Of a stretch of 64,000 nucleotides of DNA, positions 27,637 to 62,719 are shown one piece after another. Both the position numbers and the translations under genes were made by a program. The notes beneath the pieces are model-generated. The model was not told where the DNA came from, did not search any database, and saw only the letters and a program-made list of their open reading frames with translations. Position 1 is the first letter of the stretch. Each line of letters opens with the position of its first letter. Origin of the DNA: Ascoidea asiatica JCM 7603 (Eukaryota; Fungi; Ascomycota); assembly GCA_001600695.1 (NCBI GenBank), contig BCKQ01000012.1:457312-521311 (forward strand), written 5' to 3'.

Positions 27637-30487
27637 ATGATAATTAATTCATCTAAATCTTATTTCTTCTTCTCAGTTTGGATTTTATTAAATTCAATTA
27701 GTTTTTTAAATAAAATTAATGCAGAAGATTTAGTTTTATCAACTTCATATACAACTTCTGTATCAACTTTTATTTCAACAAGTACAAGTATTATAGGAAC
27801 TGTTAATACTGATAATAATTTAGGTAATTTTCTCTTAGCAATTCCACAAGCTGATGGTTTAACTACTTCTTTAAGTGTTTCAACTTCTCAAGGTCAAGCT
27901 TTCACTTTTGCTATTCTTTTAGCTACAATTGCAATAACAACAACCTAATCTTCAGAACTTCCAACGGTTATCACAATTTCTTCTTCTTCAACTTCTTCTT
28001 CAACTTCCTCCTCAACTTCCATTGAATCTACTTCAAAATCTACTTCAAAATCTACTTCGGAACCTAGCATAGTTGAAACTATTTCAAGCACATCATCTGC
28101 TAAGACAACTTCTAGTTCATCATCCACTTCCGTTGAAATAACTACATCTTCAAAAACTACTTCAGCTGAATCTAAAACTTCAGAATCTACCTCAGAATCT
28201 ACTTTAGTCGAAACTACCTCAAAAACATCATCTTCAACTGAAGTTACTTCAAGTACTTCATTTTCTAAGACTTCAAGTACACCCTCTAGTTTAGAGGAAG
28301 TAACTTTAACTTCGGAATCTATTTCAGACTTCATTTCAGTTGAAACTGAATCAAGCACCTCATCATTAATTGAAACTACTTCAAGCACTCCATCATCATT
28401 AGATGAAACAAAATTTCTTTAACGTCCTCATTATATGAAATCACAAGTACATCTTCATCTTCAACGCCTACAGTAGTAGAAGAAACTACTTTAGAATCTT
28501 CAGTCGTAATTGAATCAAGCATTTCCCCAACTTCAATTTCAACATCAGTCTCAGAAGAAACTACTTCAAGTTCTTCTTCGCTTGAAACTTCTAATGCATC
28601 ATCTTCCGTTGAATCTACCTCAAGTACATCCATATTAATAAAAGCTACTTCAACTTTAACATCAACATCATATTTAGTTGAATCTACACCAAACACATTA
28701 TCTTCCATTATTGAAACTGATTTAACCGAAGTATCTGAATCATCTTTAAATTCTGAGACATATACTTCGGAACTTACAGAGACTAGTTCAGTTTCAGTTC
28801 AAATCTCTTTACCAATTGAATCTATATCAGATAATTCTATAGGTTCAGAATCTACTAAAATGTTATATACATCAAGTGCTTCAATAACTAATTCTGAGGC
28901 TACTTATTCTTCGTCAGAGAGTACATTAAGTGATATTTTACCGGCAACATTATCTTCAGAAGAGTTCGTTTCTGAGACTACTGAATTTTCAATCGAAGAA
29001 GCAAGTCAATATGAATCAATTCAATCTGAATCAAAGAATACAGAAGAACTTTCATCTCAATTGAGACAACCACTGTCTCAATTACTTCCTTCACTTATTC
29101 TAGTAATGAAGCTATCTCAAGTAATATCAATGAAAACTCAGTAGAATCAAGTAATTCATTCATAGATATTTCTGAAGAAGTGAAAAATGTTGAACCTTCA
29201 AATTCTTTCACAGAATCTTCAGAATTCTCTGTTTCTTCTACCACTTTTACAGTTACTGAACTGACCTCAAAAAGCTCTACAAGTTACATTGTAACAAATC
29301 AAATTTCAACTTCCTCGTATTCTTCAATTTCAATCCCCACAATTATTTCACATTCTATTACTTCAGATATTATTTCAATAGAAACTTCTTCAGAAAAATA
29401 CGAAAACTCTTTAACTTTAGAATCAGAACATGAAGATGAAACAACAACTAAAAGTTCAATTGATTCTTCCTTTACAGAATTAGAAACAACACATATACTA
29501 GAGTCTACAACCACTCAATATACCACTACAGCACTAGAACCAGTCTCAAGTTATGAATTCAATCCCAGTTCCATTTTAATTTCTGATGATTCTGACTTAA
29601 ATCTGATTTCTTCTACCCCAGAAGTTACAATCACAGCTTTCAGAAGTGAAACAGAACTGCAAACAAAAATTTCTGAATATCCTTTTTCAACCTCTGAAAA
29701 TGATGATTCTGTTGAAAGTTCAAGCACGGTCAAAACAAGCTATACCTTAGAATCAAATTCTGATTCAATTTCTTTTATTTCAGATGAAATGACAACTCTT
29801 TCAGGAACATCTTTGACAATAAATGAAATATTAATCCCTTCATTTTCTAATTTAAATGAAATTTTCAACACCGGTTCCAATTCAATGCCTCAATCTACAT
29901 CTGAAATTATTTCAGAATCAGTAGTTACCTCAACATTCACTGAACTTCAGACTTTATCCTCCTTTGAAAAAGAAACAATATCTTCATTTCCTAGTTTTGA
30001 AGCAGGATCAGAAACTGGAAGTCATACCCAAACTATAGAAAATTCAGACACTCTAAGTGATTCTGAATATACAAATGGAATTTCAGGAACTACAGTATCA
30101 TCTGCTGACACAAGAATGATAAAAATAACTACACTGACATTGGAGAGTAATATAGAAGAAACACCTTTTTCATCAGTTGTATATGAATCTCAAGGTTCAT
30201 ATAAAACCGAAAGTTCTACTCACATCTCGTCCATTATTACCAAATCATCTTCAAAATCTTCAAGTAAAGATTTGTCTGAAAGTTCAGAAAGTGGTTCCAG
30301 CACAAGAAGCGCTACATTAATGGTCCAATCTACCCTTTCCCTGTCCATTCATGGAAATTCCTTAGAGTCCACTGGAACTACTGTTTTGATTCAGCAATAC
30401 GAAGCACAAGCTACTAAGCTCTTAAAAAGTTTCACAAAGTACATTGCTACTTTTATTGCAAATTTTTCTCTTATTTTACTTTTATAA
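27637..30487 (+). pseudogene. Disrupted Ser/Thr-rich GPI adhesin/flocculin-like gene (~950 codons reconstructed)
   Basis: Signal peptide at 27637; in-frame TAA at 27946-27948; frameshifts at ~28411 and ~29057. S/T/E-rich reading continues across the lesions to a GPI signal (QQYEAQATKL...). Paralog of 32123-33982. Confidence 0.8.
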
Positions 30488-32122
30488 TCTTCTCAAAAAA
30501 ATTTCACTTCATACTTACTTATATTCATTTCTTGAAAAAATCTAGAGCTTTTTATCAAAGATTAGTTGTTAATTTTTTTTTTTACATAAAAGATTGAATT
30601 TTTTTCTCTTAATTCAAAGCCCTTTTTTTTAGTATCAAAGCAGCATTATATTCAAAATTCAAAATTCAAACTTCTATTTCTATTTCTATTGTTATAATCT
30701 TTCTAAACTATGGTGATCTGTCACATTAACGTTTGTTGTGACATGAATTTTTCTTTTAATTCATTTGATATTTCTCTCCTGTTTTGATTGCAACTTGAGT
30801 TCGAGATCAAAAAGCCACACTGCAGCTAGGACGCAGGGTTAGTGCAGCAGGGCAACTGGAACGAACTTACAGGACAGGCCTGTAGAAACCATTTCTCCAA
30901 CCGAGCTTTACCGTTACTACCGGTAAAATGAAACCACTTTCAACTATTGAAGTTCTTGAAGTTAATTCTCACTGACGAAATATTTGAAGCATTAGATACT
31001 TATCTGATATCAAAGCAGTGGAAAATTGGAGTTCAAGTATGCTATATTCTAGGTATCTTTTTGGAACTCTTTCTTTATTAATATCAATTGCTTTATCTCA
31101 AATATTTTAAAGATAGGCTATTAGTATATAAGTGGCAGGCTGTTGATATAAGCTCTGCTTTTGGGACTTGTTCAGAAAACTTTGTGTTACTCAATGGGAA
31201 AATATGACGAGAAATAGTTTACTTTAAATGATTTTAAATAGAAATCCATTCAAACTATGTTTGAGAAGTAGCAATAAAAATTATTCATAATATTTTCATG
31301 CAAAGTTCTAGGTCAAATGCTTTTTTACAAGAAAAATATATAATATGGTAATACTTAAAAAACTATTTCTCACTAAATCAAACAATAAAACGGTTTTAAT
31401 TGATCCAACCAAGTTTTGTCACTGAAAAAATTAATAAACAAAAAACATTCGCTACAACAGCTGGACAATTAATAGCTGCAAAATCAAATATCGACCATTT
31501 TACCGTTTATTGGTAAATTTCAACAAAGAGACCAAAATTCCTGTTACCGCAGATCAAAAAATAAATATGGTGAAACCAATAAGATGTTTTGATAATTATT
31601 TTTTTGTTTGGAGATAAAAAAGCATAATTAATTTATTTGAAAATTATTGTAGTAATAAATTATTTGTATATTTACCATAGGGAATTACTTTTTTGTGCAA
31701 TTATAAGACATAACTTTTTTGGTTTAACAGTATATCCAAAACAGTGAAGATTTTTATTGATTATATCTATTATTCCAAAGAAAAGGATCTTTATAACAAT
31801 CTAGTTCTAGATTTGAAAAGAAAATGGTTTTAATAACTCATTTTGGTTTGGTTAAAACTCAAAATGAATATTTTTCAATTCATTTATAATTTGATTTATT
31901 ATATCACTAGCAGAAAATATATTTTAGAAATGTCCAAACTGAATACTTATTCTCACTATAAAAAAGAAGGATTATCACCAATGAAAGCTGAATTCATTTA
32001 TAAAGCTGAATTATTATATCTAATATTAATTCATTATTAAATTAATCGTTTTGACAAGGACAATTCTTAAAGGAAATTGAAAATAATTAAACCAATAGTT
32101 ATATGAAATCAGCAATCTCAAA

Positions 32123-33982
32123 ATGTCTTTTAATTTTTTTTATTTATTAGTTCTTTTCACAACGCTTTTTGGAAAATTGATTTTAGCAGAAGAAGGATTT
32201 TATTCTAATATTCAAAATACTGCTTCAAGTAGTGCTAACCTTGGTGACTTTATTGCAGCAGAAACTGGGACTACTGATGGAGCTTTAAGTACCTCTCTTA
32301 GCACAACTTTGATTACATCTTTAACTACTTCTTATACTACATCATATTCAACAATTGTTTCAACAAGCACCAGTGTGTTATCAACGGTCGATGCAACTAT
32401 AACAGCTGAAAATCTTTTTTCAGAACTCTCAATTTCCTCAGAGATTCCTACAAAAGGATTAACACTTTCTCTCAAAGTTTTGGCATTACAGGGAGGAAGA
32501 CAATCTACAGTGGGTGTACTTATTAGAACTATTAAGATAACAACTGTATCATCATCTGTTCTTCCTTCAGTTTTAACAACTACTAGTGCATCTACAGTAA
32601 AGTATTCAAATTCAACTATAATATCTCCAGATACCCTGAGCTCCAGTGAAACTTCCAAAACGGATATTTCAACATCATATACTCTGCTTACAACTGAAAA
32701 GAAACAAGTCTCTACAACAGATAAATCCACAGAAACAACAAGTAACTTAAGTGAAACAACAGATATTTCAATTACTTCAAAAGAAAGAGTTACAACTTCT
32801 ATTAAGAAGTTACCCACAACAACCTCAATTACTACTTTTGATACAACTTCTGTTTCCACTTCTAAGAGTATTGTAAGTACAAAATCTACTACAAGTACTT
32901 ACTCCAGCGAAACTGAAGCATATACTGAAACGGATGAAGTTAAAAAATATACAGCAACTATTACATCCCTTACTTCTACTTCTACAGGCTCTACAGAATC
33001 AACCGAAGCCAATTCATTAGCTGAAACTGGTGAGTATATTGAGACTAGTAAGTCTATTGAGTCGGTTGAAATTACCAAATATACTTCTACTATTACAAGT
33101 ATTGGTTCCACTGAATCCACTGACTTAGAAGAAGCTCAAACTTCAGTTAAAATTACAGAAACTACTGAAAGTACTGAAACTATGGAATCTTCAGAATCCA
33201 CTAGATATACTACGTCTACTACAAACACTAATAGTATTTACTCAAGTAATAGTATTATAAATGGTGGTTCCAGTGAATATACTTATTCAAGTGAAACTAG
33301 TGAATCTTTTGCAATAATTGAAGATATCCAGTCTACTGAAACTATTCCTTTTACTGATTCTACTGTTTTTGCTGGTTCGAGTGTGTCTACTGAATTTAGT
33401 GAATCTACTAGTGTAACTGCATCTAGTAGTTCCAATACATACACAGATTCTCCAAGAGCAATTACTATATCCGCTTCTTTATCGGTATTTGAGACCTCTA
33501 TGACGACTGATTCTAGCATTTCTTCCAAGAGTACAGGTGGTACTAGGAAAAGTACTTCTGATGAAATAACTGAATATTCAACAGATTCTTCATTTGAAAG
33601 TAAAACAAATGAAATGTCAACTGTAACTTCAGAAGAGGTTTTTGTTTCAAATAATGAATATTTTTCCAAAACTTCCTCGGAACACATTACTGAAACTTCT
33701 TCACATTCAACAGCGATTTCAAGTTCAGATATTAGTGAAACTGGCAAAGCTTCAATTGTTTCACATAGTTCATCTTCTTCAAGCGATTCCAAAACTTCAG
33801 GTCCAAATACTTTTTCTACTCTATCTACTGTTTCAATATCAATTCAAGTAAGTACATCACTTACAAGTGAACCATCAGCTGTAGTATCACAATATGAAGG
33901 TAAAGGTAATAAAGTCTTTACTTCATTGAAATTTTTTGCCTTTGCAAGTATCTCAAATTTCATTTTTATTTTACTCTTATAA
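32123..33982 (+). CDS. Ser/Thr-rich GPI-anchored adhesin/flocculin-like cell-wall protein
   Basis: Signal peptide, TES/TET-rich stalk, SQYEGKGNKV plus hydrophobic tail. N-domain shared with 27637 (TSYTTS.ST..STSTS...TV; GLT.SL.V...QG; TI.ITT). Confidence 0.85.
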   Translation: MSFNFFYLLVLFTTLFGKLILAEEGFYSNIQNTASSSANLGDFIAAETGTTDGALSTSLSTTLITSLTTSYTTSYSTIVSTSTSVLSTVDATITAENLFSELSISSEIPTKGLTLSLKVLALQGGRQSTVGVLIRTIKITTVSSSVLPSVLTTTSASTVKYSNSTIISPDTLSSSETSKTDISTSYTLLTTEKKQVSTTDKSTETTSNLSETTDISITSKERVTTSIKKLPTTTSITTFDTTSVSTSKSIVSTKSTTSTYSSETEAYTETDEVKKYTATITSLTSTSTGSTESTEANSLAETGEYIETSKSIESVEITKYTSTITSIGSTESTDLEEAQTSVKITETTESTETMESSESTRYTTSTTNTNSIYSSNSIINGGSSEYTYSSETSESFAIIEDIQSTETIPFTDSTVFAGSSVSTEFSESTSVTASSSSNTYTDSPRAITISASLSVFETSMTTDSSISSKSTGGTRKSTSDEITEYSTDSSFESKTNEMSTVTSEEVFVSNNEYFSKTSSEHITETSSHSTAISSSDISETGKASIVSHSSSSSSDSKTSGPNTFSTLSTVSISIQVSTSLTSEPSAVVSQYEGKGNKVFTSLKFFAFASISNFIFILLL

Positions 33983-35334: not shown

Positions 35335-37518
35335 ATGTTAAAGGAACAAATTAATATCAAAACAAACAGTGAAATAGTTTCAAATTTAATAAAAAATAAT
35401 ATGTATCAAAATAATAAACAAATTAATAATAATAATAATGACAAGAATCAGAATAATATTAAAACTATAAATATTTCTAAATTAAATTCAAATTTAATTA
35501 CTGATTTTAATAAAAATTCAAGAAATTTAAAATCTTTTGAACAATATAAAGAAATGTATAATGATTCAATACAGGATCCAATAAATTTTTATGAAAAACA
35601 AGCTATTGAAAATTTAACTTGGTTTAAAAAATTTGATTTAGTTAAATATCCAATTTCAAATAATAATAAAAATTCAGATGATATTCAAAATACTTCTTGG
35701 TTCTTAAATGGTAAATTAAATCCTTCTTATAATTGTATTGATAGACATTGTATTAAAAATCCAAATAAATTAGCTATAATTTATGAACCTGATGATCCTT
35801 TTGAAAAAAATAATTTAAAATTAAAATATACATATTCTGAATTATTAATTGAAGTTTCAAAATTATCTCAATTATTAATTTCTTTAAATATTAAAATAAA
35901 TGATATTATTACTATTTATTTACCAATGATTCCACAATTAATTATTTCAATTATGGCTATAAATAGAATTGGTGCTATTCATTCTGTAATTTTTGCAGGT
36001 TTTTCTTCAAATTATTTAAAAGAAAATTTAATTAATTCAAATTCAAAACTTATTATAACTTCTGATCAATGTAAAAGAAGTAATAGAATTATTGAAACAA
36101 AAAAAATTGTTGATAATGCAATTTTCAATAATTCAACAAATGTTAAAAATATTATTTTATTTCAAAGAACTGGAAATTTAAATATACCATTTAATAATAA
36201 AATTGATTTATGGTGGCATGAAGAAATTAAAAATTTTAATAATTATATACCTCCAGTTGAAATGGATAGTGAAGATTCTTTATTTTTATTATATACTTCT
36301 GGTTCAAGTGATAAACCAAAAGCTTTAATTCATTCAGTTGCAGGTTATTTATTAAATTGTATATTAACTTGTAAATATATGTTTGATTTATGTCCAGATG
36401 ATATTATATTTACAGCTGCTGATATTGGTTGGATCACAGGTCATTCATTTGTTTGTTATGGTCCATTATTAATTGGTGCAACTACAATTATTTATGAAGG
36501 TACTCCAACATTTCCAAATCAAAATAGATTATGGGAAATTATTGATAATTATAAAGTTAATCAATTTTATATTGCTCCAACTGCTTTAAGATTATTAAAA
36601 GGTTTATCTTATGGTGATGATTCAATTGATAAATTTAATTTAAATTCTTTAAGAACAATTGCAACTGTTGGTGAACCAATTGAATCAGATTTATGGTATT
36701 GGTATTTTAAAAAAATTGGAAAAAGTAAAATTTCAGTTTTAGATACCTATTGGCAAACAGAAACTGGTTCACCAATAATTGGTCCAATATCTGGAATAAC
36801 TCCATTGAAACCAGGTTCTTGTTCATTACCATTTTTTGGAGTAAAACTTGCAATTTTAGATCCTCAATCAGGTAAAGAATTACAAGGTAATAATGTTGAA
36901 GGAATTTTAACAGTTTCAAGTGCTTTTCCTTCAATTGCAAGAACTTTTTATAGAAATCATTTCAAATTCTTGGATACTTATTTTAACCAATTTCCAGGAT
37001 ATTTTTTCACAGGTGATGGAGCTTCTAGAGATAATGATGGTTATATTTGGATTTTAGGTAGAGTGGATGATGTTGTTAATATATCTGGACATAGATTATC
37101 AACTACTGAAATTGAATATGCAATTCTTAAATCTCCATTAGTATATGAAAATGTTTGTATTGGTACACCAAATTTAGTAACTGGTCAATCATTAATTTGT
37201 TTTGTTATTTTGAAAGATATAATGAGTGAAATCGACATTGAAGTTTATAAAAAAAATATAATCAGTCAAGTTCGAAAACAAATTGGAACATTAGCTAGTC
37301 CTTCAAAAGTTTTCATAGTTAAAGATTTACCTAGAACTAGAAGTGGTAAATTGTTAAGAAGAATTTTAAGAAAAATTGTAAATGGTGAAGAAAATCAAAT
37401 TGGAGATATTACTACTTTAACCAATCCAGAATGCATCGAAGATATAATTTACCTGGTCAGAGGATCAGATTCTCATAGACGAAGGTATAAAATCAAAAGC
37501 TCAAAGATTGAGAAATGA
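35335..37518 (+). CDS. Acetyl-CoA synthetase family (acetate-type pocket, variant P-loop)
   Basis: DIGWITGHS, TVGEP, DTYWQTETGS, GRVDDVVNISGHRLST, PRTRSGK; P-loop reads YTSGSSDKPKA. Confidence 0.9.
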   Translation: MLKEQINIKTNSEIVSNLIKNNMYQNNKQINNNNNDKNQNNIKTINISKLNSNLITDFNKNSRNLKSFEQYKEMYNDSIQDPINFYEKQAIENLTWFKKFDLVKYPISNNNKNSDDIQNTSWFLNGKLNPSYNCIDRHCIKNPNKLAIIYEPDDPFEKNNLKLKYTYSELLIEVSKLSQLLISLNIKINDIITIYLPMIPQLIISIMAINRIGAIHSVIFAGFSSNYLKENLINSNSKLIITSDQCKRSNRIIETKKIVDNAIFNNSTNVKNIILFQRTGNLNIPFNNKIDLWWHEEIKNFNNYIPPVEMDSEDSLFLLYTSGSSDKPKALIHSVAGYLLNCILTCKYMFDLCPDDIIFTAADIGWITGHSFVCYGPLLIGATTIIYEGTPTFPNQNRLWEIIDNYKVNQFYIAPTALRLLKGLSYGDDSIDKFNLNSLRTIATVGEPIESDLWYWYFKKIGKSKISVLDTYWQTETGSPIIGPISGITPLKPGSCSLPFFGVKLAILDPQSGKELQGNNVEGILTVSSAFPSIARTFYRNHFKFLDTYFNQFPGYFFTGDGASRDNDGYIWILGRVDDVVNISGHRLSTTEIEYAILKSPLVYENVCIGTPNLVTGQSLICFVILKDIMSEIDIEVYKKNIISQVRKQIGTLASPSKVFIVKDLPRTRSGKLLRRILRKIVNGEENQIGDITTLTNPECIEDIIYLVRGSDSHRRRYKIKSSKIEK

Positions 37519-40409: not shown

Positions 40410-42515
40410 CTAAACTCTTGATTGTTTTACAGCATCGAAGATATTCTGAATAACCAATGGATCCTGAACTGCACTAATATCTCCTAAATCATTTTCATCT
40501 CCGAGTAAAATCTTTCTCAATAATCTTCTGACAGTTTTTCCAGTTCTTGTTTTTGGTAGCTCTTTGACAATGAAAACCTCTTTAGGAGCAGCAAATGCTC
40601 CAATTTCATTTCGAACTTGACAAATTACACCTTTTTTAATTTCTTCTGGCAATAACTCATTTCCATCTTCATTATTACTACTATCATCTCTTAGAACCAC
40701 AAATACAGATACAGATTCTCCTGTAAGTTTATTAGGTTTAGAAACTGCTGCACTATCAACAACATATTTATAATGTAAAACTGATCCTTCAATTTCAACA
40801 GTTGATACCCTATGTCCAGAAACATTTACAACATCATCAAGTCTACCCAATAAATATATATATCCATCTTTATCTCTGGAAGCTGCATCTCCTGTGAAAT
40901 AATATCCTGGAAATGGTTTTAAATATGTCTCCAAATATCTTTCTCTATCTCCCCAAATACCTCGAATCATTCCAGGCCACTCATTTTTAAAACATAATGC
41001 ACCTTCAACATCATCACCTTCTATTTCTTCTCCTGTTTGAGGATCTAAAATTGCAACTGAAACTCCTAAAACTGGAAAACCTGATGAACTTGCCTTCATA
41101 GGTGTCACTCCACTTATAGGAGCAATCATTATACTACAAGTTTCTGTCTGAGCATAAGAATCTTGAATAGTAATTTCTGTTTTACCAAAATTATAATAAC
41201 ACCATTTCCAATCTTCAATTGTACTAGGTTCACCTCCACAAAGAAATGATCTAATTGATTTTAAATCAAATCTATTAATTAATTCATCTCCAAACTTATT
41301 TAACATTCTAATTCCAGTTGGTCCTAATAAAGTATGAGTTACTTTCCATTTTTCTAAAATTTCATAAAATCTATGTTCATATGGGAAAAATGGTATACCT
41401 TCAAAAATAACTGTTGAACATCCTGTTAATAATGGTCCATAAGTTCCAAATGTATGACCTGCAATCCATCCTATATCTCCTAAACAAAATATAACATCAT
41501 TTTCATTTTCATCCCATGTATATTTTGAATTCATTACTGAACTTAATAAACTTCCTGCAGTTGAATGAATTACACCTTTTGGTTTACCAGTAGATCCTGA
41601 AGTATATAATACATATAATGGATCTTCACTATTCATTTCAACAGGTTTAATATATTTATCATATAATGGAACATTTTCATCCCACCAAAAATCACGTCCT
41701 TTAGTCATTGATGTATCTTTTGAACCAGTATTTCTGTAAACAATAATATTTTTTACACTTTCACAATCTTTTTTAATTGCATCATCAATAATTTTTTTTA
41801 ATTTAATCGTTTTTTTTCCACGAATTAATTCATCAGAAGTTATAATAATTTTAGATTTAACATCAGATATTCTATCTCTAACAGATAAATAAGAAAATCC
41901 TGCAAATATACAACAATGAATTGCACCAATTCTATTAACTGCCATACAAGAAATTATTGCTTCTAAATTCATTGGCATATAAATACAAACTGTATCACCT
42001 TTTTTAATACCTAGATTAATTAAAAAATTACTTAATTGACAAGTTTGTTCCAAAAATTCTTTATAAGTTAAAATTTTAGAATTATTTGGTAAATTTCCTT
42101 CGAATATTAAAGCAGCTTTATTTGGATTTTTTATTGCATGTCTATCAATACAATTATAAGAAGCATTAATTTTACCATTTGTAAACCAATTATATTCTAA
42201 TTTTGAAATATAGTCTTGATCATTATTATTGAATTGATTTGAATTAGATGAAATTAAATTTTTATAAATTTTTGGTTCTTTAACTTTATCAAAATTTTTA
42301 AACCAAGTTAAATGTTTTAAAGCCATTTCTTTATAAAATTCATCAGAATTATTTATTGAATGATTATATAATTTATAAAATTCATTCATTGATTTTATTA
42401 AAGGTTTACCAGTATGTCTTTTGAAATATTCTTTACTTGGTTTAATCGGTTTTGATAAATCATGTTCAATAAAATTTTGATCATGCCTTGGATTTGAAAT
42501 TTGTATATTCTTCAT
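40410..42515 (-). CDS. Acetyl-CoA-synthetase paralog with altered acyl pocket (acyl-CoA synthetase)
   Basis: YTSGSTGKPKG, GRLDDVVNVSGHR and PKTRTGK intact; pocket motifs changed to GWIAGH, CGGEP and DSYAQTE. Confidence 0.9.
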   Translation of the reverse strand: MKNIQISNPRHDQNFIEHDLSKPIKPSKEYFKRHTGKPLIKSMNEFYKLYNHSINNSDEFYKEMALKHLTWFKNFDKVKEPKIYKNLISSNSNQFNNNDQDYISKLEYNWFTNGKINASYNCIDRHAIKNPNKAALIFEGNLPNNSKILTYKEFLEQTCQLSNFLINLGIKKGDTVCIYMPMNLEAIISCMAVNRIGAIHCCIFAGFSYLSVRDRISDVKSKIIITSDELIRGKKTIKLKKIIDDAIKKDCESVKNIIVYRNTGSKDTSMTKGRDFWWDENVPLYDKYIKPVEMNSEDPLYVLYTSGSTGKPKGVIHSTAGSLLSSVMNSKYTWDENENDVIFCLGDIGWIAGHTFGTYGPLLTGCSTVIFEGIPFFPYEHRFYEILEKWKVTHTLLGPTGIRMLNKFGDELINRFDLKSIRSFLCGGEPSTIEDWKWCYYNFGKTEITIQDSYAQTETCSIMIAPISGVTPMKASSSGFPVLGVSVAILDPQTGEEIEGDDVEGALCFKNEWPGMIRGIWGDRERYLETYLKPFPGYYFTGDAASRDKDGYIYLLGRLDDVVNVSGHRVSTVEIEGSVLHYKYVVDSAAVSKPNKLTGESVSVFVVLRDDSSNNEDGNELLPEEIKKGVICQVRNEIGAFAAPKEVFIVKELPKTRTGKTVRRLLRKILLGDENDLGDISAVQDPLVIQNIFDAVKQSRV

Positions 42516-44937: not shown

Positions 44938-45942
44938 ATGATTTTCGCTTCTGTTGCTAAAACATTATTTGCTACTTTTATTGCATCTAATTTTATTAAA
45001 ACTTCAGCTATTCCAGTTGATAATGAAGCTTCTGAATTAGCTAAAAGATATGAACAAGAATTATTAGCTAAAAGATCTGATGATTCTGCTTTTGGAATGG
45101 CTTCCTTAAATGGTGGTACAACTGGTGGTACTGGTGGTACTACTGTTGAAGTTAGTACTTTATCTGATTTACAAACTTATGCTGCTAAATCTGGTAAATA
45201 TATAATTTATATCACTTCTGATATTACTGGTGATGATGTTGTTAAAGTTTCTTCAGATAAATCAATTTTAGGTAAATCTTCTGGTATTACTTTAACTGGT
45301 GTTGGTTTAAGAGTTTTAAAAGCTTCTAATGTTATTATTAGAAATATTGCTGTTGCAAAAGTTTTAGCTCCAACTGATGCAATTGCTGTTCAACAATCAA
45401 ATAATGTTTGGATTGATCATTGTGATATGTCTTCAGATCAAGATCATGGTAAAGATTATTATGATGGACTTATGGATATAACTCATGGTTCTGATTGGAT
45501 TACTGTTTCAAATTGTTATTTACATGATCATGAAAAATCTTCTTTAGTTGGTCATTCTGGTAATAATGGTGCTCAAGATTCTGGTCATTTAACTGTTACT
45601 TATGCTTATAACTACTTTAAGCAATTGAACTCAAGAGGTCCAAGTTTAAGATTTGGTACTGCACATATTTATAACAATTATTACTTAAATATGAATACCT
45701 GTATTAATGTTAGAAAAGGTGCTTCTGCTTTAGTTCAAAATAATGTCTTTTCCTCCACAAATAAACCATTATATTCTGTTGATGGTACTGGAAAAGCTGA
45801 AGCTTCTAGTAATGATTACGGTAATGCCACTGCTGTTATTGATTCTACTACAGTTTCTCTCAATTATACATACACACTAAAAGATACATCTGATGTAGCT
45901 TCTTATGTTGAAAGTAATGCCGGAGCAAACTTATCATTTTAA
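44938..45942 (+). CDS. plyA: Secreted pectate lyase, polysaccharide lyase family 1 (PlyA/PelA-like)
   Basis: Signal peptide plus KR propeptide; AFGMASLNGGTTGG, NVIIRN, DAI, VWIDH, DYYDGLMDITHGSD, K-SLVGHS, SRGPSLRFG (catalytic RxPxxR). Confidence 0.95.
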   Translation: MIFASVAKTLFATFIASNFIKTSAIPVDNEASELAKRYEQELLAKRSDDSAFGMASLNGGTTGGTGGTTVEVSTLSDLQTYAAKSGKYIIYITSDITGDDVVKVSSDKSILGKSSGITLTGVGLRVLKASNVIIRNIAVAKVLAPTDAIAVQQSNNVWIDHCDMSSDQDHGKDYYDGLMDITHGSDWITVSNCYLHDHEKSSLVGHSGNNGAQDSGHLTVTYAYNYFKQLNSRGPSLRFGTAHIYNNYYLNMNTCINVRKGASALVQNNVFSSTNKPLYSVDGTGKAEASSNDYGNATAVIDSTTVSLNYTYTLKDTSDVASYVESNAGANLSF

Positions 45943-46266
45943 ATAAATTTAGTCACAATTAGTTTATAGAATCAAATCAAAACACCATAGTACTATTTAA
46001 CTATTTCACTTACTAATTAGCAACATATTAGAAAACAACTCTTTTACACTGTAGTTCCAAGATTGAATTTTTGAATCCAGCAACAGTTTGTTCGGTATCT
46101 ACTCTAACAAAAGCGCTATATACTTGGAATACTGTACACCCCAAAGTTATACTTAGCAATTTGTTTTTACTAAAACAACTACACTTTTCTGCAGCGTGCC
46201 GCTAGCCAAGCCGTCCACTGCAAAACCGCTTTTACAAAACCGTCCAGTATCCATAGTTCCATCCGC

Positions 46267-47283
46267 TGTAAGTAAACGATTCAAATTAAATTGAAATCAC
46301 TTACTTCCATTTGTCATTTATCCGTCCACGGTTTCAATTTCCGTATATATTCCGTCCCAGCCTATCCTCTAGCATTTTTTAATTTTTTTATCAAATCCAG
46401 GCCATCTTTATGGATCGCCTCCCAGTAAGGCATGTTTCAAATTTATATGTTATTTTTACATAGTGTCTTCCACAAATCAATAATTCGGCCTTCTTGGTCA
46501 AGGTTTGAGTCTCACAATCCAACTATTAAATCTCTCATAAAAGCAAGCATTATTGCCAATGTTCCATACTTTAGTCTCATAGGTCAATCATTTGGCATTA
46601 GGATGCTCAGTTGAATCTCTTACAAAATTATTAATCATTTTCATGTCAAATCAACTATTGATATATTCCAGATTTGCAGTTTCAGAATCCAACAATTGGT
46701 TATCTACAGTTTTTCCGCCAAGCTGAAGTTTTCAATTTCAACAATTATTTTCCAGTTTTGCTATTAACAAGCTTACAATTTCAACAACTAGTTGTCAGTT
46801 TTACAATTTACAACCTTACACTTTCAACAGCTATTTTTAAATTTTAATATTTACAATCTTACAATTTCATCGATTATTTTTAAATTTTGCATTAGTTAAT
46901 TTCACAATTTCCACAAGTAGTTTTGCCTTGTAGTACTGCAATTTAAACAACTCCTTTTTAAATATTTGTGCCTTTAAATTCTCTATAAATACTCTTACAT
47001 TTATTTTTTTATTAGTATAAGCTATTGGAAAAATTAAACAACAATAATGCAATTTTAGAAGTTTAAACTTAATCAACAATACAAGACTCTAAATCAAAAT
47101 ATTAAACAGTAAAATTAAAATTGAAAATCTAATGTTTTGGATCTGCCCGTTTTTTTGTTACACTTTGTTGGTTGTACCTTTTGGTTTTAATAGTAAGCAT
47201 TTTGAGCTGCTATTTATTAACTGCTCGATACGTGATAATATTGATTATCTTATTGGGTGAGTAGGATCGATGAGAGTTTTACA
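46267..47283 (+). mobile_element. TG..CA-bounded element, copy A (1017 bp), 4-bp TSD CCGC
   Basis: CCGC|TGTAAG...GTTTTACA|CCGC; both ends homologous in reverse orientation to 54581-56474. Confidence 0.8.
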
Positions 47284-47347
47284 CCGCCTGTGTGAGTTTG
47301 AAAAGGGGATGCAAACCAGGTTCCACCATCTTACGCCACGCTCGGAT

Positions 47348-47612
47348 TGTAGTTCGAACTAAATATCTAATTATTATTAAGGAGATATCTAATTCAAATT
47401 ATAATTAATTGTAAATTAAAATATAAAATATATAAAACTTATATAAAAAATATGGGAAATAAGTTGCCTATTTATATTAGTGGAAATAGAAGCGGGTAAC
47501 CCATCTTAAGAATAAATATGTAAAACTACTATCTGAAAGTTCACTTTCCATACTTAAAAAAAGAAATAGAATAATGCTCTGTTCTGGAAAACAATACGTC
47601 ATTCTAACTACA
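47348..47612 (+). mobile_element. Solo LTR (265 bp)
   Basis: TGTAGTT...AACTACA perfect 7-bp terminal inverted repeat; second partial copy at 12893; no TSD seen (CGGAT vs AACAA). Confidence 0.7.
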
Positions 47613-48499
47613 AACAAAACAATTCCAGTACACTCGAGATGCACACGGAATATTGAAGCAAGAATAAATAGTGCAGACCCAAAACGTTCTAATTCATTTA
47701 ACATGCAATAGGCAGTTGTGAGAGTGCGATAGAATGTAGTAGAATACGCTATGCCATCTTAGAAACTCTAATAGTAGCCTAGTATTTGCAAGACAATTCT
47801 AATAAAAAAATAAAATGATTAACAATCATTTCCACCACACCGCTCCGCTGCTCACAGATATTCGCGTCAGGTCCCGTCTTGTATAAACGCACCCGCAATG
47901 AGCAGCCGACATTAAATTATTGAGATGCAGTACCTTAGAAATGGATTCTACTATTTGCTGAGAAACTTCTCTGTAAATTGTCCAAGACTCTCTATTAATA
48001 GCACCACTCTACAAGCAGATCCCCATTATTCAGATATGGTTATTACAATTGTGCGTAACTGTTATTACTATCTTCACTACCCTTTTTAGTAGTACTACTA
48101 TAATTAGTAACTGATTAGTTTTACTATTAAACGTATTAGTTTTTATAGCCTTGCTTCACTTAATACGGTTGTTAGTTTATTTAGTTATATTCCTTTTTTG
48201 CAATAATTAATATGCTGATTATTATTTTTATTATTATTAGTATTATTAGTAGTATTTTTATTATTATAATTATTATTGATGTAATCATTATTGTCATTAT
48301 TTTAATCATTGCAATTGCTAGTTTTTTGTGGCTTGGTTGAAACATTCAAGTGTTCGTGTTGTTCAAGGGATGATTTACCGTGCTTCTTAAAACTATAAAC
48401 AAACAATTTTGAAAAGAAAAAAAGGCATATTTTGCCAGCTACCACGCCGCGCAATATCACGGATATAAAATATCTGACGTTTTAGAAGACTGTTCTTTG

Positions 48500-50840
48500 A
48501 CTCTGAACTATCATCAAATTGATTTATGATTAATGCCGTTGGTAGTTACGATCTGCTTACTGCATTTGTTTTTTTGGTGTTCCAATATAAACAACAACAA
48601 TCATTCAAAGAAATTTGAATATGTGCTCTAAATGATAGGGCTCGTGGTTGACTTATATTATTTTGAGCGCAGCATAAAATAGTGGTTCGCGTTTTTACAA
48701 AGTGTAGATTTTAATCAATTGCTTGATTCAATTTTAAAAAAAACAGCTGATCTCTCATCACTGACTAGTTGGGCAAATCAAAACCCAGGATTTGCTAGCA
48801 CAGACCTTGTGTAATATCGTAAAAGAAAACCATTCAAGACATTTGTTACCCGTGAAAATACTTACAATCCTCAGTTTAAATGGGTCAAGAATCCTAGCTT
48901 GGAAGCGTTCTTTTCTTTTGGCACCAACAAAATTGTGTTAGCTTCTTTCTTTCACGTTGAACAAATAAATGTAAGTTTGCTTGGAAACTGCATTCTACAT
49001 TTAGCAAAATTGTATTAGAAAAGTATTTATGATGAACGTGCTGCTTACAGGATCTATACATTTGGTTCATAAAATTCTGAATTATATTTTTAATTTAGAA
49101 GTTAGATTAGAAGCTAACAATGATTCATGAGATGGTATGAATCTAGGAGTACCTTCAATTTATCAGGTAATGCCTGGTTTCTCTAAAGAGTTTCATTACT
49201 TAAAATCTCTGTAGAATGCTGACAGAGAAATTACCATAGCAAGTAAACCAAATCACAAGAGCTGGCATGACAAAGTAGGCTGCTAGTTGCCATGGCCAGT
49301 CTTCAATGAAACTTCATGAGTTGGGAGTTGTTATAAACCAAGCTGCAAATCACAATCCTCAAATAAAAGATAGTGATATGAAAATAAATGCAAACTGATG
49401 GATCAAATACTCAAAAAGGAAGCCTCGTTATCTCATTCTGCTTTTGAAATAACAAGGTCTTTACCAATTATTTTTGTAAGGGTTTATAACTCTCTGGGTG
49501 TGCCGTTAGCCTCTGCTGAAATTAGAAAAGCTATTGCCAAATTAAAAGACACACAAAATTCTGTAGAATCTAAAGGAGTTGCTGACTGGGAAGGCAAAAT
49601 CTGTTGAAATAATTAACCAGTTTGCCTGATTAGAGAGTTGCTTCGAGCGATGGTACAGTAGTTATTGGAAAACATGCGTTTCTCCAAGAACTTAAAGCTA
49701 GAAAATTGGTAATATTTGACGGTACTCCTTCCACAATGATATATAAGAAGACATATATAACCTTTGGCTATATAGACAATAATGGTTTATTGGTTTCCTG
49801 GTGCTCATGCTGTTGTAGATTCTGAAAATAGTCTTCAAGTATTACTAATTCTTAACTTGCTTTCAGAAATTTTTACGGTCCCCTCTCAGCAGAGTTTTTT
49901 GTTTGTGATAACTCAGTATTTCTTCAGAAATGCTGTATCAGAGTTTAGCAGAGGTACTATTAAGATCTATTTATTTATTTGGCATGTTTCCACTTATCGG
50001 TCAAAGAAATTAGGTCGCATATATTATCGTTTAATTTTAAAATTACTATTGGATGCCATGCATACCAACTCCAGAAGAGATGTATTAACTTTTGTACAAA
50101 ATGCTAATGAAGCTGGTGGTCAAATTGGCTCACATATTCAAACGTATATTGGGGTTCAGCGTACGCTGATTGCAAATTTTCAATAAGTTACAGGGTTTTT
50201 TTCTCCACTGTTGCTTCCAACCCTTAGTACTCACGCTTTGGACGGTCTTCATTCTCAATATAAGTCACCATATTTGGGTAAATTTCCAAAAGCACATCGT
50301 CTATTTCAGTTAACCAAAAAGCTAACTGCATTTCAGTCTGCAATTGACAAAAGAAAAAATGTTGGGGCCTTTAAAAACATTTACCTTTCCTCTTTGTCTG
50401 CAGCAAGATGGCCTCAGTTCCTAAATTTTTCAGTAACACCTCAAAGAAAAATGGGTTCTGAAATATTACTTGCGATGAAATCCAAAGAAAGGCCTGGTCT
50501 GGAACTTAACAAAGTTGATGGCGTGAATGATGCGTGTAATTGTACCTTTTTCTTAAAATTTCAACTAGCTTTCAAACATGTTTTCTTTTTGGATCTCAGA
50601 AACGAAGACGCACTGATCAATTGGGAAACTATTTCCAATCGATTTGGCCGAGGTGGATTAGAAGCTTATGAAACTATTGAAAACATTGACACTTTGAATA
50701 ATGGTACTTCTGGTCCAATGGGTTCGCTGTGGTTGCTCAACGAAGAGCAACATTCGATGAGGAATTAGAGAAAATAAGATTACAATATAATAGTTCTCTT
50801 CAAGAGTTCAACATTGATGATGCGGTTATGATGCTCTTAG
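48500..50840 (+). pseudogene. Long decayed orphan ORF (possible endogenous viral/plasmid sequence)
   Basis: Successive plus-strand fragments (49398, 49782, 50211); the last two are in one frame separated by a single TAA. Higher GC and no Asn runs, unlike host genes. Confidence 0.4.
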
Positions 50841-51633
50841 CGGTAAGTAATATTAATATTATATAAATAAGTTAGCCCGATTTACTTATACATGTTTAAT
50901 AGTATTTCCAGTGCTTCGTGCGAAGCTTTTCTCGTTGTTTAGCACTGGAATTATTTACAACTGCCAGGTTTCAACTATTATACTGTGCAAGACATATACT
51001 TTTTTTTTTAGTCTAACTGCAACGAGGAACCCACAAGAATTTAAATTCTCACAAAAATTGGAATATTATTTTAGCTTATATTTTTGCGTTCCAGACCAGC
51101 ATGATACATGCCCAACAACTTTCAACTTTTTTTATCCGTCTATAAAAGGGATTTTATCCATTGGTCATTTTTCATGCTTTTGGACACAAACAAATTCGAA
51201 TGCCAAACGGTAATCTATAAAACCTGTTTTTGAAGGAACTAAAAATAAAATAATAAAATGTTCCTAAACAAAAGTATTTCAAAGAGGGTAGTCAAAGCAG
51301 CCAAAAAAATGTATTTAAATACAACGATACTGAGTAAGCCACGGGCTAGAGTTTGTTAAAAGCAAGTGAGAACTAAATGCATAAAATAATGTATGAGAAA
51401 AAAAAAGGTTCTTTCTGTTAGCATTCTCTTTGTATGGTTTCTAAGTTTCTCAAAACATACTTCCACAAAGGTTTGCGCATCAACGGTGCTCTGAAAAAAT
51501 ATTATTATGCATTTGTTGGTTTTTACTTTTCTGTTGTTGGCTTGTTTTCGAATAATTTTCTAAGGCATTTAATATTTGGCACTGAAAATTTCAGAAATAT
51601 TTTAATTACTATCTTTTGGAGTTAAGCTCTCCT

Positions 51634-51999
51634 ATGTCCCTTATCAATCCTGATATTGGAGAGGATATTTTTTTAGAAACTTGCAATGATTCAGGTAAAA
51701 CCAAAAACTTAATGAAATTTCATCAAGCAGTATTAAATGAAATTAAAATAATTGACATAGGAATATTGGAAATAGATGTAGAGAATGAATTTTGATCTGA
51801 ATGGGAAATAAATTACGTAGGTATTTATAACAAAAGCAAAAAGTTAAGCTGTTTTGACTGTATTGGTGAGCAATTTAAATTGTTTCCAAAAAGTATTGAT
51901 TCTGACATGTCGGCAGAAGCAGTAACTACAGATGTAATATTCCGACCTATAATATTGGTATCTAAACAGTTTATAGATGCTGAAACGTTTTATTTATAA
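51634..51999 (+). pseudogene. 121-codon orphan ORF interrupted by one TGA
   Basis: MSLINPDIGEDIFLETC...ENEF*SEWEINYVG...AETFYL; internal TGA at 51793-51795. Confidence 0.4.
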
Positions 52000-52859
52000 A
52001 TGCCCTATGTGACGTATTTCAACAAAATTCTAATTTACAAAATTTTGCAATCAAAGTTTGTTTTAATTGTATTCTTGCTACTTAAGCTATCGTCTAACAT
52101 TTGTTTACTCTTGGCAAATATATGCTTTATCAGATTTTACTAGTCACATCCGCTATGTTAACAAACCATTAGGATAATCCGAATTAACGAGTGCCATTAC
52201 CCTGCCGCCGTCTTAAGCATGTGAAATATATTTAGATCTAATAGCATATGCTTACGTAATCTATGGATTATTACGTAAACTGCGAAACTGCAAGTTTGAC
52301 TTTTCTATGCTTTAGTGAGTTAGCTGGATTTCTTGCTTTTTCTCCTTTAAACTTAGCCAAACTAAAGAAGAGAAATATTTTTTTTTTACATTTTTAATTA
52401 CATTTACTTTCTACTAGTAGTACAGATAACTATAGTAAGATGAGCAAACCACATCCGTGGCATTTAATTTCCTTTACCTGGCTTTGAAACATCAACTCGT
52501 CTGGAAATTGTTGAAGAGGTGATGAGAAGATATGACATCAACCAGCTTCCAGATAGTCCTCAAATTATTTTCAGAAAAAATGATTTTATTGACATTTTGG
52601 AGGCGGCAAATCAGATTGTTGGTGGAGATGCAACTATCGATGAACTTTGCCACCGAAGAAACAGTATACGTACTGCAGTACCTGTGTCAAAGAAAAGAAA
52701 ATTGGATGCATCTGTTGAATTCGGTGATTCTAATGAGAAAATTAGTGACGGTGATGTCGGTCCCGCTGAGGTAACGTTATCACTTTTAAAATTGAAAGCC
52801 GAAGGTCATTTGAATGAAAATTCCTTTTATGCTTTAATTAAATCTTCGCCAAAGTAAAA

Positions 52860-54270
52860 GAGGATCCTCATTTAAGTATTACCGGAAGAATCCCTTAAGT
52901 CAAAGGTTTATCTTGATTTCTTATCAAAACAAATTTCTTTTTATCCTTCCTTTGTATTGATTTAGATTATGTAAAGACTATATAGCCATATATAAAATTA
53001 TCTTTAAAACAACTAGAATCTAATTCCATTTTTAATTTTTCAACAATTACAGCTCCATCCTTAGCACCTACTTCTGAAGTTGGTTGGGTTCCTTTTGCAA
53101 CTTTTAATTTTAATAATTGCTTTTCATGATCTATAATCACAGAAGAAGATTTCAAGAACCGAGTTGACCATATAGTTGGTAAGACATCATTGTTGTATAT
53201 CTTATTTGCAGTATCAGACTAGCATGCTGGATCTACTGCATTTATACAGATAATTTCTTCGTCTTTATGATCAACTGGAAATGTGTCGATATTTGTATTC
53301 TTAATTTTATAAGATTTTAAGTCAACTTTCCATGTAAAAATTGACTTTGTTCTAGGAAGGACCGCTATTAAGTAATGTGAATCATACGTTTTATGATCAT
53401 AAAATTCATGAAAATGAAAAAATGAAAATAAATCATCTTTGGGAATATTTTCAGGTAAATTTACAGGTATGTTAAACAGTTCTTTGGTCAATTGTAAGCC
53501 TTTACATTTAAATACATATAATGATTGATTTGTTAAAAAATTAATAAACATTCACCATCTGCTAGTAAGGTAGCATATATTATAGAGTAACTCGTTTATA
53601 GTAAAGTTTTTTTTAATAAATTTATTAATTTCAGACTTGAATCACGATTCGGAAGATTAAAAGGAATCCATACATGATTTTTATTGAATCTGGATGCAGA
53701 AACCACAGCTTCCCATTATTCGTTTTAAATAATTTTTGAATTGACTTTTGATAACCAGAGAGTTTATCATGCAAACCAGTTAAGAAAATTCTTTTTTTCT
53801 TAAAATTAGAATGAAAAAATAAACTTAACTGATCATTATCAATAGTTTCAATATTTTGTTTATCTTTATTTGTGAGCATTCCGTTTTACAAAGAATTAAA
53901 TGAAGCTTGATGAACAATATTATTAATATCAACATCATCAAAAAGTTCGACAAATTGTATTAATATATGACTTATATTTTTATTTTTCAATTCATGAATT
54001 AGTAAAGAAAGATCACCATTTAAATTATCAATAGATTTATTCAGATAATACTGATTCTTGAAAGTAATTAATTGATTCGATAAACTAAATTCTGCTTTTG
54101 TTGGGATTATATCACTGAAATTCAAATTCTGAATGAACATTTTTAAAATCAATTTCAGTATTATTAACATAATTTTTTAAACTATTAATATCAATTTCAA
54201 TAACAGCAACGAAGTAATTCTTAAAAGCATTACCATAAACAAACATTTGTTGAATTATTGGCCATTACTA
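52860..54270 (-). pseudogene. Decayed orphan ORF
   Basis: Four abutting minus-strand fragments (54170, 53879, 53551, 53155); the last two are joined across a single stop. Confidence 0.45.
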
Positions 54271-54580
54271 TGACCATCAATAGTAGAAAAAAACAGATAT
54301 CACTATTTTTATTTTCATTGCTGCCCCCATAAAAATGGAACATTTAGTTTTTGAGGTTGTATTTCCATTTACGATTTTTGGCGGAACCGACAAGGGTGAG
54401 ATGCATAACGAGGTAGCTGTTTTGCTTTTCGTAATGTGAGATCCTAATATTATTTACGGTGTTGTGTGTGTTAATCTAAGTATATACAGAGGGCGTACTC
54501 TAAGTGAACCGCTATATACTGCCAGAAAAACTAAATAGCACCCCAAATTATTCCAAAATTTACCAATAATTATCTCACTG

Positions 54581-56474
54581 TGCAAGACTTCACAACGATC
54601 CTACTCACCCAATAGGATAATCAATATCACCAGGCGTCGACGAGTTAATAAATATCAGTTCAAAATGCTTACTATCAAAAACCAAAGGTACAACCAACGA
54701 AGTGTAACCAAAAAGGGGGGAGGAGGGGCTGATCCAAAAAATTGATTTGTTATTTTAGTTTTACTATTAATATATTGATTTATATAATCTTTTATTGTTT
54801 AGTAAATTCGATTCTTCAAAATTGCTTAAGAATTGCTTAATTTATTTGATAATTTTAAAGTAATACTAAAAAATTATAAAAGTATTTATATAGTTTAGCA
54901 GGCATACATATTTAAAAATTAATTGTTGGAATTGTAAAATTGTAAAATGTAAAATTGAAAAATAATTGTTAAAATTGTAAGATTTAAAATTGTTGATGAA
55001 ACACAAAAAAAGATAAAAATAGAAAAAATATTAATTAGTTAAAGGTAACACAGAATTTTAATTACTATATAAAAAATATGAAATTTTATTAGTATTTAGG
55101 GTAACATTATATAACGCTGCATTAATTAAAGGAAATCATTGTTTTTTATTTTTAGCTTTATTTTGATAAAAGAATTTAATTGAAGTTAAAATTACTTGAT
55201 TTGGATTGAGAACTTATTTTGGTGATACGGTCGATTATCTTGTTTTGAAATTTATCATAATAAATATGTTTCTTGATATGGTGAATAAATCCTGGAGGCG
55301 GAGAACCATTTTTTCCATTTAAAAGATAATTGTAATGATCAATATTAAAGGTAACCTTATTTCCTTGGAAATGATTAAAGGAAGTTTTGATTCTTTCATT
55401 ATTATTGACTTCATTTTTAAATTGATTTAATAATTTTTGATCTCTATTTGAATGTAGTTTTGAATAAGTGATATAATTTGAAATCATAATGGAAAATATT
55501 TCAAAATAAATGGTATTTCTAAATGAATACTTTTTTGATCTAAATGATTGATCAATATGAATAACAAATTGAAAAGTTAATGAAAGATTATTAAATGAAA
55601 ATTTATTTAATTGTTGATTAAAGTATTTTAATTTAATAGGTTGAAGTTTAATGTGTTTTGAAACTGATCTTGATAATTGATTATAAATTGTTTGAACTAA
55701 AGGATCTTGAAATTGAATATCGAATAATTCAAGTTTATTTTTATGAAATTTAATAATAATTTTAGTGTTAAAAGATACATGTAATATTTCTGATTGCATA
55801 CCAGTGGTAACACAGTTAGCTAGAAAAACTTTTAATGCTCGATTCTTAAATAGATCGTCGTAATAGATTAAAATTTTGTTATCTTATTGAAGAGTTTTGA
55901 ATATAACTGATCAATTTGAAGAAATAAAAACTTGTTGTTGTTGAATTGATGTAAAAGTTTCTTGATTATTAATTAAATAATTCTTGGAATCTCATTGAGA
56001 AGATTCTCAATCATTAATATCAATTATTGTAGGCATTCTGAAAAGAATAATTTAACTTGATTGCATAATATATAATAATAAGGAAAATATATTTGAAAAT
56101 ATGTGAAATTCAGCTAAATTTGTACGGACCAAATTCTTGACAAATTGGCTTGAAAACTTGACTTATCAGCCCGATTTATTCAATTTTTTGAACGATATTT
56201 TTGTGAAAGACCTAATTGTTGGATTTTTGGGCTGAAAACTTGACCAAGAAAGCAAAATTGCTGATTTTGGGGAGAAATTATGAAAAAATAAAATATGAAT
56301 TAGAGAAAAGGTTTACTGGGAGGAGATCCATAAAACTGGGGTTGATTTGATAAAAAAACTAAAAAAAGTTAACGGATAGGGTAGGAAGGAATATATACCG
56401 AAATTGAAACTGGGGACGCAAAAATGACGAATGGAATTAGGTGATTTCAATTTAATTTCAATCGCTTCCTTACA
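54581..56474 (-). mobile_element. TG..CA-bounded element, copy B (1894 bp) carrying an internal ORF
   Basis: Reverse complement starts TGTAAGGAAGCGATTGAAATT and ends GTCTTGCA. Plus-strand flanks are ACTG / ACGG (3/4 TSD; CCGT in element orientation). Both ends align to copy A. Confidence 0.8.
55176..55799 (-). CDS. Orphan ORF inside element B (5' part decayed, extends to ~56040)
   Basis: 207-aa open frame in element orientation; coding-like sequence with stops continues upstream; no recognisable domain. Confidence 0.45.
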   Translation of the reverse strand: MQSEILHVSFNTKIIIKFHKNKLELFDIQFQDPLVQTIYNQLSRSVSKHIKLQPIKLKYFNQQLNKFSFNNLSLTFQFVIHIDQSFRSKKYSFRNTIYFEIFSIMISNYITYSKLHSNRDQKLLNQFKNEVNNNERIKTSFNHFQGNKVTFNIDHYNYLLNGKNGSPPPGFIHHIKKHIYYDKFQNKIIDRITKISSQSKSSNFNFN

Positions 56475-57199
56475 ACGGCAATATTTTATTTGCCCCTCGT
56501 GAAACGGAATTCAATTTATTAATATTTCCCCAGTTTTTCTTTTCGGATATAAAGGGAGCCCACATTTCCCACATTCATTCCTGTTTCGAGTTAGAAGGAA
56601 TTTGGGTCGCGAACAAAACCCGTTTCAAAAGGTAGGGTGTGCTGTAAATTAATAATACCCATTTTCAAAAAAGGACACAAACCGATACATTTGAACAATC
56701 CTTAACAGTTGGTAACCTCAAGTACATATTTAGACCGTTCTAAAATAAAAGCAAAAACCACGGGGTAAGGCGCTACACGTCTTACAGTACAAATCATTGA
56801 ATTCATAATTCTGTCATCTACAATGATGAGTTTTACTTTCAGTATGAAAATCATTTTCATTTTTCAAATAATTTTTATAATCTTTTTTAATACAGGATTA
56901 AATTAGAACCTAGATAGGTCACGCGTGTATTTATGTGGAATGGCGAAATTTGAAAAAAATTTGCTTTTCCACGATTTTCGAAATTTTGCCCAAATTTTTG
57001 CATTTGTTCCACATTTTGCATTTTCAATTTTCTATCAATTTTTTTTCCAAAATTTGCTTCCAAAATTTGCTTTTTATCAAACTTTGCTTTTGTCAAGATT
57101 ACAATCAATCACTTTATAAATTAAAAATCCAATAATCTCAAATCCTCATTCAAATTAAAACGAAAACAAAATAATTGAACTGAGATAAAACAATGAAAA

Positions 57200-61272: not shown

Positions 61273-61446
61273 TCGGGATATTATTGAGTACTGTTGACAG
61301 AGATGGTTTTTCGATTATTTCTGACCTCAGTAACTAAAGTAGTCAATTAGAGTAATCTTTAAAAAATTTCATTCTATTTTTACTAAAAAGTTACCTTCTT
61401 TTTTATTTTTTTGTTTACTTATTTTTTATTTCTTTATTATTTTTTT

Positions 61447-61646
61447 TGATACATATTTGTATCATTTTTATATCGGATAATGCTTCCGTGTATCACTTTT
61501 TTTTTTTTGATACACATTTGAACCAAATTTATATCGGATATTAATTCTGTGTTTCATTTATTATTTCCTGATACATATTGTTATCAATATCCTATCGGTT
61601 TACATTTCCTATCTCCTATTTACTCTCTTGATACAGTGTTGTATCA
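61447..61646. repeat. Four ~61-bp tandem units each with a TGATACA-N4-TGTATCA palindrome
   Basis: TGATAC at 61447, 61508, 61569 and 61629; TATCGG at 61471, 61532 and 61593. Confidence 0.8.
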
Positions 61647-61686
61647 TTTTTATTTTTATTCTTTTAAATTTTATTATTATTATCAA

Positions 61687-62691: not shown

Positions 62692-62719
62692 CTCGATTTT
62701 CTATTTTTTTTTACTTATT

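Follow-up and report, generated by a model that had tools for sequence, protein, structure and literature searches.

The window, a stretch of 64,000 nucleotides of contig BCKQ01000012.1 of the yeast Ascoidea asiatica JCM 7603, carries a gene that poses a question of specificity: which acid does an ACS enzyme activate when its catalytic motifs are retained and the residues that line its acetyl pocket are replaced? An earlier note on this DNA, made from the letters alone, had reported intact adenylation motifs (YTSGSTGKPKG and PKTRTGK) side by side with the altered motifs GWIAGH, CGGEP and DSYAQTE, and had placed the alterations at positions 311, 386 and 414 of Salmonella Acs. All five motifs do read as reported.

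Scaffold, catalytic residues and acyl pocket

The gene is a single uninterrupted frame of 701 codons without a stop (Table 1). It also lacks CTG codons, so that the ambiguity of the CUG code is irrelevant to how it is read. By descent and scaffold its product belongs to the ACS family: it scores 742.9 bits against TIGR02188 (acetate--CoA ligase; cut-off 724.95), also exceeds the cut-off of PRK00174, gives a confident AlphaFold model (mean pLDDT 91.8), and has fungal ACS enzymes as its closest solved structures (Foldseek TM 0.90 to C. albicans Acs2). The A3 P-loop, the A5 QTE, the A7 Asp, the A8 Arg/Asp/Gly and the A10 Lys, all present, assign it to the ANL superfamily. In the alignment, the P-loop, G387-E388-P389, D411, Q415-T416-E417, D500, R515, D517, G524, R526, R584 and K609 are kept, and the N-terminal CoA residues F204, G206 and R232 are unchanged.

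The pocket was mapped by way of a bacterial ACS, P0116, which aligns without gaps to residues 285-623 of Salmonella Acs and then links to the multiple alignment. A352, G427 and A455 fall on 311, 386 and 414 without gaps, just as the earlier note had it; this gapless mapping and the absence of CTG codons rule out misalignment or a genetic-code artefact. According to PMC8383264, PMC10455477 and PMC3098103, the equivalents of T311, V386 and W414 form the acetyl pocket, where the Trp acts as a wall; the first of these sources attributes the favourable contact with the acetyl group to that Trp, and PMC10906504 adds ACSS2 Tyr407 as a fourth pocket residue. With Trp414, Val386 and Thr311 taken as the mark of the acetate-specific enzyme (EC 6.2.1.1), the aligned residues would place the 701-residue protein outside that class. 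T, V and W are found at the three positions in 120/120 of the best word-search homologues; one of the 120 lacks the regex motif, yet has the W aligned there.

The pocket changes extend beyond the triple noted earlier, to Y355L, G384L, S385C, T412S, G419C and H421I. V386G would open the pocket, and the bulk of G384L probably provides a new floor, a role assigned to it from its position.

Table 1. Features of the ACS1-derived gene and of the adjoining paralog (window coordinates; residue equivalents in Salmonella Acs numbering)
Feature	Position	Strand	Reading and basis
ACS1-derived AMP-forming acyl-CoA ligase gene	40410..42515	(-)	intact ORF, 701 aa; ACAS_N + AMP-binding + AMP-binding_C
A3 P-loop, Y304-G314	41574..41606	(-)	canonical; motif reading
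A352 = T311	41460..41462 (GCA)	(-)	pocket, shrunk; alignment
L396 = Y355	41328..41330	(-)	pocket position, ACSS2 Tyr407 equivalent, shrunk; alignment
L425-C426-G427 = G384-S385-V386	41235..41243 (G427 41235-41237, GGA)	(-)	alignment
S453-Y454-A455 = T412-W413-W414	41151..41159 (A455 41151-41153, GCT)	(-)	Ala replaces Trp wall; alignment
C460, I462 = G419, position 421	41130..41138	(-)	G419C, H421I; second-shell hydrophobic additions; alignment
K660 = catalytic K609	40536..40538	(-)	A10 motif, with S607T; alignment
Ser-Arg-Val C-terminus	40413..40421	(-)	weak putative PTS1-like tripeptide; aligns to -SRK, -TRK of ACS1 paralogs
Adjoining ACS1-derived paralog	35335..37518	(+)	727 aa; T/V/W kept; P-loop degenerate at 36292-36324

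Origin, selection and the placing of the changes

The A. asiatica genome (20.3 Mb, 71 contigs) has five ACS genes. One is ACS2-like, one is the canonical ACS1 (G000:C1:1058.5 kb), and the other three, this gene among them, are faster-evolving derivatives of ACS1. In the ACS phylogeny its product lies inside the yeast ACS1 clade (support 97/99), apart from Acs2, and joins the other ACS1 copies of the same genome (94/97); its branch, of length 1.45, is the longest among the paralogs. Yeasts are thinly sampled in this tree, its far prokaryotic rows were thinned after a first tree, and a long-branch caveat applies to it; support for the inner grouping could be raised by an AT bias that its members have in common. 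On its placement in the tree, then, the gene is the product of a lineage-specific ACS1 duplication. Horizontal transfer from Trp-less prokaryotic enzymes is ruled out: a joint grouping with them is rejected (AU p=0.0045).

The adjoining paralog keeps T, V and W, as the earlier note stated. Its P-loop reads TSGSSDKPKA, its C-terminus carries a basic extension, and of 263 other ACS-like proteins one shares the Asp that it has at the position of G269. Its pocket is that of an acetate enzyme, but its catalysis may be weak. A tandem ACS1 paralog (L003:1459-3462; G000:C1 at about 1063.1-1065.1 kb) has T311L (GWVLGH) and retains V386 and W414, which makes it a second and different pocket variant in the same genome.

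Purifying selection on the 701-codon frame is clearly indicated. Invariant columns are 73% identical to the canonical ACS1 and variable ones 36%, the first and second codon positions differ from ACS1 by 38% and 28%, and simulated neutral substitution at 5% left the frame open in none of 1000 runs. The invariant-column identity and this simulation rule out an old pseudogene. Some relaxation is nevertheless real, since the gene sits on a very long branch (1.45 changes per column) and has changed at a quarter of the invariant columns: 56 of 218 near-invariant columns are altered here, whereas the four paralogs have 8, 23, 40 and 14 such changes.

These figures, the continued passing of the acetate--CoA ligase cut-off, and the fact that three of the seven pocket sites had prompted the finding in the first place all suit a relaxed, broad-range or weak enzyme, still working mainly on acetate or propionate, whose pocket has drifted in a redundant copy. 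Because the divergence spans the whole protein, the concentration of changes in the pocket was tested. The pocket positions were set by the GrsA specificity code, in a mapping onto ACS that agrees with PMC3098103. Invariant sites have changed at 6/7 pocket positions (T311A, V386G, W414A, Y355L, G384L and T412S), at 7/52 motif positions, with the key catalytic residues not among the seven, and at 43/159 of the remainder (Fisher p=0.0013). When the three prompting sites are set aside, 3/4 pocket sites have changed, which is still nominally significant (p=0.047); the tests are indicative only, because sites are treated as independent and the reference set is redundant. Direction is a separate matter: 17 of 162 derived changes are to G/A/R/P and 62 to F/Y/M/I/N/K, and T311A, V386G and W414A run to Gly and Ala, against the AT drift that most derived changes follow. 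The drift account is further weakened by the other long-branch paralog (0.92), which retained T, V and W, and by the favourable contact that the Trp makes with the acetyl group, the loss of which should cost affinity for acetate. We consider a merely relaxed acetate enzyme quite unlikely. A real variant of a known enzyme family, an ACS1 duplicate of this lineage with a selectively remodelled acyl pocket, is a well-founded reading of the sequence comparisons.

Acyl range and metabolic context

Residue equivalence, kept catalytic residues, pocket enrichment and the example of enzymes engineered at these three sites together support a move away from acetate; from them we infer, with good support, that specificity has shifted on an ACS scaffold. 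An ACS1 duplicate, freed by the redundancy of five ACS genes, would have been retuned to larger acids. W414A, V386G, T311A and Y355L would open the pocket, and G384L, S385C, G419C and H421I would partly refill it with aliphatic side chains, creating a new floor of Leu, Cys and Ile. The side-chain volumes of the triple (-247 cubic angstrom) and of the second shell (+134) leave a net gain of about 113 cubic angstrom, or some four methylenes, by a crude bookkeeping of residues that does not describe a cavity. Space of this size would suit straight or branched alkanoates of C4-C6 rather than aromatic or long acids, and an active ligase for such aliphatic acids is what we think the gene probably encodes. 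Its likely substrates would be butyrate, valerate, hexanoate, isobutyrate, isovalerate and 2-methylbutyrate, with acetate used poorly; the chemistry would be the normal two-step ANL reaction, in which acid and ATP yield acyl-AMP and, after domain rotation, the acyl group passes to CoA. The methyl group of Ala414 may limit chain length or activity; a literature search turned up no paper on W414A.

The earlier note had offered medium-chain, branched or aromatic acids as substrates. The shift from acetate that this presupposed is borne out, as far as sequence can speak to it; aromatic or longer medium-chain substrates are unsupported, because W309 remains in place and the space behind the former Trp wall has gained Leu, Cys and Ile. 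A ligase active on a non-alkyl acid, be it an aromatic or heteroaromatic one (benzoate, phenylacetate, furoate), an unsaturated one, or a hydroxy or oxo acid, would suit the decaying wood and beetle galleries in which Ascoidea lives, the remodelling of many pocket positions (315-317 and 357/360 among them), and the lack of an aryl-CoA ligase among the ANL genes found in the genome. It has to contend with a new lining that is aliphatic and without a polar anchor, and with aryl-CoA ligase models that score far under their cut-offs (128.9 against 375.25 for the benzoate-CoA ligase model TIGR02262), so that the protein falls outside that class. It must also accommodate the retained W309: PMC3098103 gives 4CL and the medium- and long-chain ligases a His at this position, and the 4CL-type His is absent here. 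A non-alkyl substrate strikes us as rather improbable.

A third possibility bears on activity itself: the copy might carry out a half-reaction only, serve a structural, non-catalytic role in ACS oligomers, or have been silenced recently. Changes along the CoA/pantetheine path (C201, C202, G398, G401) would fit, as would the release of acyl-AMP by a natural medium-chain ligase given poor substrates. A FarA-type motif lies upstream of three ACS paralogs, unlike this gene, upstream of which no ORE, CSRE or FarA motif was found. Retention of F204, G206, R232, G567, R569, R635, D560 and K660, an intact frame and a confident structure model all tell against such a loss, and we judge it very unlikely.

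For the C4-C6 ligase that we prefer, the genome offers a partial metabolic setting. Its other ANL genes, by sequence reading, include at least an FAA1-like gene, four FAA2-like genes (L015-L018), and FAT1-like, Lys2-like and DIP2-like genes; no Pcs60-, ACSM- or 4CL-like ligase is among those found. Acyl-CoA oxidase is represented once and a methylcitrate dehydratase is present, and acyl-CoA dehydrogenase and methylcrotonyl-CoA carboxylase have no match in the genome. A straight-chain product could therefore enter peroxisomal beta-oxidation, and, speculatively, such an outlet would fit the weak PTS1. The tripeptide -SRV is non-canonical as a PTS1 and differs by a single residue from the -SRK of a paralog; the FAA2-like ligases end in SKL or SRL (three of the four), and no yeast evidence for SRV as a PTS1 showed among the papers listed by a literature search. 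Branched acyl-CoAs would lack a catabolic outlet, given the missing dehydrogenase and carboxylase matches, and might more plausibly, again as speculation, be turned into esters by the products of eight AATase-family genes. These ATF/SLI1-like genes occupy eight loci in the genome; S. cerevisiae has about three genes of this family.

Nothing beyond proximity speaks for a functional cluster with the neighbouring AVT transporter and pectate lyase. The latter (44938-45942, (+); PF00544) is an enzyme of secreted type in a budding yeast, and its protein is less AT-skewed than those of its neighbours. Two ORFs rich in Ser/Thr at 29180-33982 (+), whose hydrophobic C-termini resemble each other, probably encode GPI-anchored wall proteins, and the end of the window (46000-64000) has few genes, higher GC and short unassigned ORFs.

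Relatives and comparison with known enzymes

No relative with more than about 50% identity was found in the word search or among 50%-cluster representatives. The best of the word-search matches listed is 49% identical, in a search of at most 8000 candidates that missed S. cerevisiae Acs1 itself and whose blank is accordingly weak; the best full-length match among the representatives is 45%, and clusters can hide a member. A pocket-region search for an orthologue gave no match, an Atlas search returned generic AMP-binding clusters only, and the metagenome loci matched were all canonical for T/V/W, none with an altered pocket. No orthologue thus emerged in which the pocket could be seen to be conserved between species. 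None of 263 other ACS-like proteins has Ala at 414, Gly being the usual small residue, and no Trp-less ACS scaffold from another fungus turned up in the searches.

Trp-less ACS scaffolds are not unique, since 14 of 128 scorable 50% representatives have a small residue (Gly) at 414; among Trp-less representatives, changes tend to be found at 355, 384, 386 and 412 as well, in a comparison that ignores kinship. These W414G proteins are apparently prokaryotic, to judge from their place in the tree. The likeness can be close, P0182 having A311/G386/G414 and P0243 having L384-C385-G386, but these unnamed proteins (P0188 is another) are only 33-38% identical to the Ascoidea protein, and a common origin with it is rejected (AU p=0.0045). 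The novelty claimed for the enzyme thus stands in part: a natural fungal case is unusual, whereas Trp-to-Gly ACS scaffolds already exist naturally in prokaryotes. The Gly-at-414 proteins (P0163, P0168, P0172, P0182, P0188, P0205, P0220, P0231, P0237, P0242, P0243, P0251) vary in their pockets and constitute unexplored natural specificity variants; about ten further ACS-scaffold proteins have Phe at 414.

That a smaller residue at W414 widens the substrate range is already established. What the Ascoidea gene offers is a eukaryotic case in which nature itself puts the Trp-wall model to the test, and in which second-shell changes added by evolution and absent from rational design become visible. 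Should it prove active on C4-C6 acids, the enzyme would supply ester, polyketide and olivetolic-acid pathways with a butyryl/hexanoyl-CoA ligase native to yeast, and it would put a gene to an activity that no other gene found in the genome covers. The most ambitious version, a first natural fungal ACS1-derived short- or branched-chain ligase that arrived independently at the engineered hexanoyl-CoA design, built its own hydrophobic floor and, in a yeast of beetle galleries, feeds the synthesis of volatile esters through an expanded family of alcohol-acyltransferases, is tentative and, taken whole, unlikely.

With Saccharomycotina Acs1 (EC 6.2.1.1; TIGR02188) the protein shares domain layout, fold, and catalytic and CoA residues; it differs in its very long branch, in an identity of 45-50%, and in having smaller residues at T311, Y355, V386 and W414. 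PrpE and ACSS3 resemble it in a small residue at 386 and an altered 311. They retain the Trp, and the PrpE models PRK10524 and TIGR02316 score the Ascoidea protein at 477 and 421, where their cut-offs lie at 955 and 827, which places it outside their family. Macs of M. acetivorans and ACSM2A likewise carry a small residue in place of W414, and have a C4-C8 or branched range like that predicted here. They belong to another subfamily (E 1e-40 to 1e-32 versus 1e-200 for ACS) and carry Gly rather than Ala; the Ascoidea protein, with Ala at 324 and Trp at 234 (GrsA numbering) instead of Gly and His, and with far lower scores, is not a member of it. In Macs another Trp forms the pocket floor.

The closest parallels are engineered. 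According to PMC8383264, M. thermautotrophicus ACS W416G takes acids up to C7 and branched acids; as PMC11061225 relays Sofeo 2019, Arabidopsis ACS V399A/W427G uses butyrate, and the triple mutant T324G/V399A/W427G uses hexanoate with a kcat of 5.07 /s and a KM of 0.14 mM. Residue identity and spacing agree, and AtACS 324/399/427 are therefore taken as 311/386/414. The Ascoidea enzyme would then be an unusual natural fungal counterpart of the engineered triple mutant, altered at the same three positions with a comparable loss of side chain (-247 cubic angstrom, versus -275 in AtACS), but reading A/G/A instead of G/A/G and having G384L, S385C, G419C and H421I, which the engineered enzymes lack.
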